From contig OX337241.1 of the NCBI GenBank assembly GCA_946965045.2, positions 1,798,001-1,862,000 of the forward strand: a stretch of DNA of 64,000 bases, given 5' to 3'. The notes beneath the pieces are model-generated. The model did no database searches, was not told where the DNA came from, and saw only the letters and a program-made list of their open reading frames with translations. Numbering within the stretch: position 1 is the stretch's first letter; the number at the start of each line of letters is the position of its first letter. The stretch is from Epithemia pelagica (taxonomy: Eukaryota > Protista > Bacillariophyta). The position numbers and the translations under genes are program-made. This document shows, one piece after another, positions 26,335 to 29,396 of the stretch.

Positions 26335-27447
26335 TGTTGTTGCTTTCGGTGTTTTGTTGTTGTTGTTGTTGTTGTTGATGTGTTTTCGTTTCAATGAATT
26401 GAATGTTTCAGTTCAGGGATGATTTGATTTTGTGAGACCATGAAGAATGGCGAAAAATCATTCCTTTTCCAATCAACCTATTCGTGATTCGCTTTTTGAC
26501 ACCAGAATTCGGGCTTTGGGAAATCGACCAAATGCGAAGCTGTACTTTTTGGGCCACAGTTGTGCGATTCGGGTTGGGATCGAGATATGCCAGTTCCAAA
26601 CGCACATGCCGAATGCCGACATATTCCATGAGAATTCGACAGTATTCTCGACGGACCTATCAGTTGGGTCATTCTGGACGGTGGTTTCTCGTCTTGCTAT
26701 ATCTCGGAGGCGAGAACAGAACTCATCATGGAAGACTCCGATGGGCTCACAATGCATTCAGCAAGAGAGCCCATAGCCCATTGGCAAAGATTAGAAAATA
26801 GAAGAAGGTGAAGTTGGTTCTGAGATTCTTGATGCGGTGAGGGGACTCGAGACAGTCGAGAATCTCGCGTGTCAAGAGACGACCACCTAATTCATCCGCA
26901 ATATAAAATCAGTGCTTCGACTTCGGCTGGTACTTCGTAGTATGTTATCATTCCGTTCGCCTCCCCTTGCTCCATGTCGATAAGGAGGACAACGACGACA
27001 GTAAGCTTGACTCTTCCAATTGCAATGGGAAAGCGGCATCGTTGAATTCAAATGCATCATCAGTTGGCATTCTAAGACATTCTCGTCCCCTTTCCCTGAC
27101 TTTTCGGGCAACGGGCACCCCAATAGAGTTATTAGCAAGCAGACCGAAACTTGTTTCGTTCCTCTCCGATAAACGTTTACGATTATACAGTCACAACGAC
27201 ACTAGATACAGACGAGGTATGCCCATTTCTGGGTCTTCAATGCTTCTAGCAATTCAGTCATTCGTCTTCAAATGGTTCCACACATTGGGAGGCACGTCAA
27301 GCTCACAAAGCTCAATGCCATATATGGCTCCATTTAAAATCAGTTGTTGCTAGCCTGATGTGAGAAAAATGTTGAAACATTTTGCTCTATGATCATGTGT
27401 TTCGATGTCCTTTATGGTTCCCTAGACTGTAGAGATGGGCTTTGCGA

Positions 27448-29096
27448 TTACCCAGACTGTACAGCTCCAAGTCCCCGCAAATGTCGAAATCCAAACAATC
27501 GTGGGATCAATCGCAACCAAAGCAAGTCTCCACATAGTTCGACGATGCTCAGAGCCGAAATCCCCAAGAACAAGCCCATGGATCCTCCGACAGAACCCAA
27601 CAGCTGCGCAAAAGTAACGGCCTTGGACTCCGTGAGTCGATGTGACTGAATTTCATCGTAATTCAGCTGCATCCAAACTATATTTTGTAGTACAAAGTCT
27701 TGTGGCAACCCAAGTTGTTCCTCCATCTCTTCTAGGACCGTTACAGAGAGATCCAGCTCTGAAATGGTACCTTTGTACAAAGTCTGACGACAGGGTGGTA
27801 ATTCACACATGGCACAGGCAGGAGAATTTTGCAATACGTGTGATTCCATCTCAAGAAAATCTTCGAGACACTCACTATCATGAGTCATGGTGCAGTAAAG
27901 AAGATTCTCTGTCCCATTTCCGTCATTTGTCTGCTCTTGCTGTTCGTTGATATTCTCTAAAGCATGGTCATCTCCCCATGTTCTACACTGACATGCTTCT
28001 CGTTGAGCAGCCTGAATGCATTCGACGCGGCATTGAGCTTGTGTATAGCTCGGAGACTCGGAATGGCAACGAGCCCATGGAGCTTGCTTCTCGCGGACAA
28101 ATTCCGTCATCGATATACGGGCAAGAACATTCTTGCCAGGCGAGGCCGTCAAGTATGGTAATTGCGTATTAATGGGTGTGCCTGGTTCCTGTACAAAGAC
28201 CAAGGCACCGGCAATTTCTGTTGCATTGATTTCATAATCGTATTGATTCAAAAAGGCCAGGATTTCTAAACCCCCGTCCAATCCGGGTTGCATAATTTCG
28301 TCTGTCGTTTGAAACGACCAGCACAATCCGAAATTGGTCATTCGAGGTTGCCATACCTCGGTCGTGTTCTTTTCGATACCATTGAATTCTGTTGAGAAGA
28401 TGAAATCATCCACTGTGGTAGCGGATACGACAAGTGCCAGCTCTTCAGGTGTTGTGGGTTCGTCAATTTCATAGATGGTCAAGGATGTTTGAGACAACGG
28501 ATTACTGTTGCAGATTGTCACTTCAGGAAAGGGAAGCGATGTTGGAACAATTGTTTCCCTATCAGTCACGACATCGTAGTCACGATATTCACTTATCAGT
28601 GTTTTGATCTGCCATAGCATGAAAAGGCCGGAAGTACAAATTAACAGCAACCACAAGATTCTCTTCCACAGTTTCCATGACAGGGGATCAGACATGTTTG
28701 CAACCCCATGGATTGTTGTACCTTGGGCCCACTCATTCAAGACAAATTGCACGGGAGCGTCACGTTCGTCAAAGTCGGGATCGCCTGGTACCGGATGATG
28801 GACTCTGTCTTGCGCATGGTCGTGCCTGTCGTTGTCGCTCGATGGATCACTTCTCGTGGTGTCACTACCGCTCTTGCGCAGATGAAGCGTTTCTTGCAGG
28901 GGGATTTCGTATCCTGTCTTTTTTTGGTTCCTTGGATGGATGGAGATGATAGCGATTGTGAAATGAGCCGACTGGAGGATTCGCAAAGAGGAGTACTTGC
29001 GGGCATTTCTTCGTCGGCTCCATGTGTGACATAGTGGTCGGATCCCCTAATTTGATCAGTACTGTCCATTGGAGTAGGATCAGAAGCAGCGGTCAT
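27448..29096 (-). CDS. DEG/ENaC (ASIC/ENaC superfamily) two-TM cation channel; N-terminus offset by a 1-nt frameshift at an A7 run
   Basis: Pre-TM1 TTIHG motif, TM1 RILWLLLICTSGLFMLWQI, FPEVTICNSNP, FGLCWSF, Cys-rich thumb (YTQAQCRVEC..ACQC..C..C..PPC) and TM2 LLGSVGGSMGLFLGISALSIVEL with a GxS filter. The only ATG upstream of the HG motif (29096) is in another frame, rejoined by adding one A at 28919-28925. Confidence 0.9.
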
Positions 29097-29396
29097 GTTG
29101 TAGCTGTACAGGTTCTCCAGCTTTTGCCTCCCTTCGAGTGATTGTTATGCTTGTGCACGCAGTCTTCGAATTTTCCAAAAAATGAGACGAGATACATGTG
29201 GGTCGACGCGCGCTCTGGTGTCACATATTATTTGCATTTTCGCATGCGGGCCGGGTTTCCAGAGGGAGTATATCGTGACGATACTCTGAGTAGTAGAAGG
29301 ATTACCTATATTTTGAGTCCATTACCGGAAGTTGCTGCAGCAACTGACCGAACAACAGACAATATAAAGGAGAACGAACAAAAGGATGCGCCCATC

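Follow-up and report, generated by a model that had tools for sequence, protein, structure and literature searches.

Most accounts treat DEG/ENaC channels as belonging to animals, and only a few homologues from protists have appeared in print. Deg/ENaC homologues have been described in the heterokont Cafeteria roenbergensis, in Symbiodinium, and in Tunicaraptor by Elkhatib et al. (2023, PMC10507113), who left open whether these represent an ancient origin with loss or gene transfer and who did not report diatom sequences. A heterokont DEG/ENaC is thus already published, and a first-pass annotation of the locus studied here agrees with that paper in holding that stramenopile homologues are known and functionally unstudied. 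For the diatom clade described below we found no paper, the matches to "diatom" in our literature search being either reference-list entries or unrelated. The locus lies on the minus strand of a 64,000-nucleotide stretch of Epithemia pelagica contig OX337241.1 (positions 1,798,001 to 1,862,000), hereafter the window. Like the Cafeteria homologue, it concerns a non-metazoan DEG/ENaC in a stramenopile, and the question of origin is alike. Unlike the published cases, the diatom clade is large, with 48 representatives and about 13 loci in this genome. An expanded and well-supported clade of this kind bears on the origin of the family. The copy in the window has a start codon that is out of frame with its channel domain, and it is therefore probably a recently disabled duplicate.

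The family and fold of the encoded protein are settled by motif alignments, a structural model, and the match of that model to solved structures. The channel domain is carried by an ORF at 27448-28986, which comprises 512 codons counted from a TTG, ends at a TAA (27448-27450), and encodes the HG motif, the first transmembrane helix (TM1), the ectodomain, the second transmembrane helix (TM2), and a short C terminus. This frame continues without stops up to 29046, giving 532 codons in all, and is bounded upstream by a TAG at 29047-29049. It matches Pfam ASC (PF00858) with an E value of 1.6e-61 and 209 bits (curated cut-off 23.6), covering profile positions 3-93 and 145-453 and skipping approximately positions 94-144; a protein-atlas search of the channel protein gave the ASC assignment again. 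A sequence search of the PDB retrieved ASIC2 (6l6p, E 3.8e-21) and ASIC1 (7cfs, E 7.4e-20). An AlphaFold2 model built from 20 clade sequences (mean pLDDT 73, and 85-96 in the ectodomain core) has helices at residues 101-135 and 459-497 flanking a large ectodomain, and a Foldseek comparison with the PDB matched it to human and chicken ASIC1 (E 7e-28, TM 0.53/0.65). A two-copy complex prediction for residues 99-512 scored 0.02, a result that says nothing either way about assembly. We place the locus firmly in a diatom DEG/ENaC (Pfam ASC) clade, and the family assignment made in the first-pass annotation is confirmed.

All of the hallmark motifs named in that annotation—HG, FPEVTICN, a Cys-rich thumb, and a GIS filter—are present in alignments to ASIC1 and ASIC2. 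The HG motif reads TIHGV, as opposed to TLHGI in ASIC, and lies at 28702-28716 in the re-entrant loop that precedes TM1 (residues 104-134, 28585-28677), 5' of the first in-frame ATG, and so may fall outside the translated protein. The post-TM1 motif FPEVTICN (28507-28530) aligns with FPAVTLCN of the solved ASICs. TM2 (residues 459-485, 27532-27612), which aligns with ASIC TM2 as LLGSVGGSMGLFLGISALSIVEL, contains LLGSVGGSMG and the GIS filter (27556-27564). Also shared with ASIC1 and ASIC2 (6l6i, 2qts, 6l6p), besides the fold, the two transmembrane helices, the HG and FPxVTxCN motifs, the thumb, and a GxS filter, is the TM2 glutamate (Glu483), which is invariant in the clade alignment. There are differences, too: the diatom protein is only 20-23% identical to ASIC1 and ASIC2, its finger falls short of theirs by about 35-40 residues, and its tail, unlike that of ASICs, carries a clade-specific cytoplasmic motif, GDLxxLRLIPRxFGxRxLxGxG (27466-27531). 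The ectodomain has 12 cysteines, all at clade-invariant columns, against 14 in ASIC1. The thumb of this copy, and of no other, contains an acidic insert of 25 residues (27898-27972), which is modeled with low confidence.

The short finger is real, in keeping with the minimal finger proposed from the first reading of the locus. Between aligned blocks, it spans 26 residues in the diatom protein against 65 in ASIC2, and the model builds it (residues 161-195, 28402-28506) as three short helices flanked by strands 155-160 and 196-201. Shortening is, however, a trait of the whole clade rather than of this gene: 66 residues separate FPxVTxC from xGxC here, and the median for this spacing is 65 (range 60-86) in 34 clade members, whereas in 73 relatives outside the clade the median is 101 and the minimum 69. 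The diatom clade therefore offers a compact, natural short-finger variant for structure-function work. A second proposal, that the pore is altered, stood only in part. Relative to ASIC TM2, the Asp at the Asp433 position is indeed replaced by Ser, along with Gln437 by Ser and GAS by GIS. Glu425 and Asp432 of rat ASIC1a are the acidic pore-mouth residues tied to Ca2+ block, and both positions are non-acidic in the diatom protein (Thr and Ser, in KAVTFAQLLGS, where ASIC2 has KAYEVAALLGD). These features are not special to this gene, since they are found across the clade: GIS is present in all 26 members with a readable motif and GGSMG in 21 of these, while the residue equivalent to Asp433 is S, A, T, N, or G. 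Nor is the pore especially altered for the family, because animal members also vary at Asp433 and use GIS; relatives outside the clade, of which all named ones are animal, have D, N, T, S, K, E, or G at the Asp433 position, and some of them use GIS.

The extent of the clade became apparent from several searches. A word-based protein search with the window protein returned clade members alone down to an E value of 4e-65—from Entomoneis paludosa, Epithemia clementina, MMETSP transcripts, assemblies, and this genome's own paralogues—followed after a gap by animal ASIC-like proteins (E 4e-19, 23% identity). The Entomoneis and Epithemia homologues are annotated as uncharacterised or hypothetical. 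An exhaustive profile search collected 12,670 family members. In a FastTree phylogeny of 135 rows, the 48 representatives (at the 50% identity level), the named ones being from Entomoneis and Epithemia, form one clade with support 100, and in a quick IQ-TREE run of 53 rows the 20 sampled clade rows do so with the same support. The clade forms its own branch, which falls outside the mollusc ASIC-like group and among ENaC-beta-like and rotifer sequences in a poorly resolved region with a weak backbone; a place within the ASIC subfamily is thus not what the trees show. The likeness to animal ASICs put forward in the first-pass annotation accordingly holds for the best-matching solved structures and fails for the tree, in which the diatom proteins do not group with ASIC-like proteins. 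The trees do not include the Cafeteria sequences; being unrooted, they allow no direction of transfer to be inferred.

Within the genome of the window (60.5 Mb in 23 pieces), a scan for ASC gave 26 exon-level matches corresponding to about 13 loci: clusters on C8 and C3, a tandem pair on C10, and one locus each on C2, C18, and C17, where C17 holds the copy described here. Its nearest relative is the C2 paralogue P0002 (52% identity). The copy resembles the intact paralogues (P0002 and those of the C8 and C3 clusters) and the Entomoneis and Epithemia proteins in its motifs, short finger, and tail motif. Unlike it, these paralogues and proteins all read without interruption from an ATG that is in frame. 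Three paralogues on C10 and C18 (L010, L011, and L012) share one intron at the same place in the ectodomain, after ...GYPE, with a GAG/GTACGT or GAG/GTAGGT donor; L011 and L012 are nearly identical through this intron, and are therefore recent duplicates on different assembly pieces. Two of the approximately 13 loci (L001, G000:C3:3522255-3523625, and L008, G000:C8:693697-694731) have stops inside the match. These may be further pseudogenes or contain unrecognised introns, and they suggest birth-and-death turnover in the family, which is also what the copy in the window mainly illustrates.

The start of the gene is broken. The span given in the first-pass annotation, 27448-29096, is not a single reading frame, as the ATG at 29096 opens a different frame. 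This ATG, the only well-placed one, begins an ORF of 119 codons (28737-29096), from which the channel frame is displaced by -1. Within the channel frame, the earliest ATG is Met98 (28693-28695), 3' of the HG motif, so that a product made from it would have no HG loop, and all eight ATGs 5' of Met98 are out of frame. By comparison, six intact paralogues and the named homologues have an in-frame ATG approximately 50-135 codons before HG, with proteins that mostly begin MT.... The ATG at 29096 (MTAAS...) looks like the ancestral start when set beside these sequences, and the 119-codon ORF is probably this start followed by an out-of-frame tail. Codon usage favours the ATG frame to approximately 29006 and the channel frame from approximately 28931, and channel-frame homology to the paralogues begins at approximately 28935. 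The peptide in the ATG frame has no detectable homologue and matches no Pfam family.

Could the break be an assembly error in a homopolymer, the true gene being a continuous ORF from 29096? The coding signal switches frame at a run of seven A's (A7, 28919-28925), and homopolymer A-runs are a classic site of long-read indel errors. However, the alternate haplotig L013 encodes this 512-codon frame too and matches the window base for base over 28560-29172, and the contigs of three runs with differing assembly characteristics (X1, X2, and X3) are concordant with both, containing no indel or joint over the region. This agreement means that the frame break is not an error, and we regard such a misassembly as very improbable. 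The contig of run X3 is of particular interest, since it is probably a transcript. It is 2423 nt long (26711-29133), is colinear with the genome, and comes from a run with 39 Mb of contigs only; the next X3 contig begins at 29333, with nearly four-fold different depth, while the presumed DNA runs are continuous through 26400-29254. From these contig ends and the uneven depth we infer that X3 is probably RNA, the run record being silent on its kind. If so, the locus is probably transcribed, colinearly with the genome. A frameshift fixed in reads and transcripts had been named beforehand as the sign of a pseudogene, and this is largely what we see, the break being present in both haplotypes and in the probable transcript contig.

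The interpretation toward which we lean, if only modestly, is that the locus is a young, still-transcribed, frame-disrupted duplicate. Probably, a one-base contraction of the A-run at 28919-28925 threw the ancestral ATG at 29096 out of frame; loss of one A from a run of eight would give exactly the present arrangement. Both the site and the nature of this mutation are inferred; a metagenome contig search yielded no close orthologues by which to locate the indel. On this interpretation, no full-length subunit would be made. Inactivation would have to be recent, or not to have occurred at all, given that the 532-codon frame is open and that a single column deviates out of 80 that are highly conserved in the family, a figure that fits a young pseudogene and a working gene equally well.

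That same intact domain, with 79 of 80 key columns conserved, is among the points in favour of a different explanation, which is possible but appreciably less probable than a disabled copy: the gene is functional, and splicing out a weak intron of 83 nt (28996-28914) links the ATG at 29096 with the channel frame in a protein of approximately 521 residues. Among the joins checked by script for open frame and length, this was the best in-phase GT..AG candidate (28914-28996, CAA/GTACTC ... AAAAAAAGACAG/G). It begins with GT and ends with CAG/G, its ends coincide with the frame change in the coding signal, its length is near that of the 75-nt first intron of the neighbouring PFL gene (GAG/GTACGT...CTACAG/G, L013 6193-6267), and three paralogues carry an intron. 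A GC-AG intron from GCAAGT at 29000 was also considered and rejected, its sole in-phase acceptor giving an intron of 29 nt, which is too short. The splice signals of the 83-nt candidate are poor. Judging by frame and homology, three introns in this genome (those of PFL, L010, and L011/L012) have GAG/GTACGT or GAG/GTAGGT donors, a pyrimidine-rich tract, and a YAG/G acceptor, whereas the candidate donor GTACTC has neither the GT at +5/+6 of the GTACGT donors nor the G at -1 that is present in 3/3 real introns, and its acceptor follows the A7 purine run rather than pyrimidines. Moreover, the nearest paralogues lack an intron here, and no spliced joint was found in the contigs of four runs, the probable RNA contig included. 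If the gene is spliced, the unspliced contig would represent intron retention; a caveat to our preference for a frameshifted copy is that contigs drop minor isoforms, and a spliced form may be among them.

A protein could also be made without any splicing, through initiation at Met98 (28695) without the HG loop, through a non-AUG start in the channel frame, or through a -1 ribosomal slip on the A-run. This too has some appeal: there is an A at -3 of Met98, the shift from the ATG frame to the channel frame is exactly -1 with A7 at the overlap of the two, and the HG region contains no allelic differences. Against it, eight out-of-frame ATGs precede Met98 and the 119-codon upstream ORF ends 42 nt before it, A7 does not fall in the phase that a classical X XXY YYZ slippery heptamer requires, and no homologue has such an arrangement. 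From established work on ENaC and ASIC, a Met98 product without the HG loop would be expected to gate poorly. We consider translation by any of these routes decidedly unlikely, and continue to favour a frameshifted copy.

Comparison of alleles bears on the same issue. While the haplotypes do not differ over a 613-nt stretch at the gene's 5' end (28560-29172), there are 7 differences in the rest of the ORF (1112 nt) and approximately 8 events in 835 nt of 3' flank. The ratio of non-synonymous to synonymous differences is 5:2 in the channel frame of this copy, which counts against a functional spliced gene, as opposed to 9:18 and 11:16 in two intact paralogues that, unlike it, show purifying selection between alleles. 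The contrast between 5:2 and the paralogue total of 20 to 34 is weak (Fisher one-sided p = 0.09), and points, weakly, to relaxed constraint on this copy.

What the channels do can at present be approached only by analogy with animal members, and for intact members of the clade. These would assemble as trimers with a pore lined by TM2, with its GIS belt, and by the re-entrant loop that carries HG, and on sensing a stimulus the ectodomain would shift conformation, opening the pore to Na+ or other cations. The first-pass suggestion of an uncharacterised Na+/cation channel is, on this analogy, reasonable for the family and doubtful for the locus itself, in view of the frame break. The existence of the clade suggests fast Na+-based sensing in benthic diatoms. 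A more ambitious picture, rather improbable as a whole, is that the clade, marked by a shortened finger, a GIS pore, and the LRLIPR motif in the tail, consists of functional, lineage-expanded, Na+-permeable sensory channels of raphid pennate diatoms responding to a stimulus unlike that of animal members; that the family arose before animals or was exchanged in an ancient transfer between animals and stramenopiles; and that even this copy could still function, by way of an unusual intron or of a -1 shift at the A-run. For functional study, the intact paralogues, such as the C2 copy and those of the C8 cluster, are better genes than the copy in the window.

Several minor observations concern the surroundings of the gene. 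The probable transcript contig extends 737 nt past the stop codon (26711-27447), which would be a 3' UTR long for a diatom or could represent an overlapping unannotated transcript, and ends approximately 370 nt before a pyruvate formate-lyase fusion gene. X3 carries a third combination of the variants, suggesting recombination within the gene. At the other end, the haplotypes break at 29254-29338, 121 nt 5' of the probable transcript start: 5' of 29254, L013 and the X1/X2 contigs are wholly different from the window for at least 2.7 kb, and the window version includes a short element (29285-29337) whose k-mer depth runs into the thousands. This break looks like a repeat or mobile-element insertion polymorphism.
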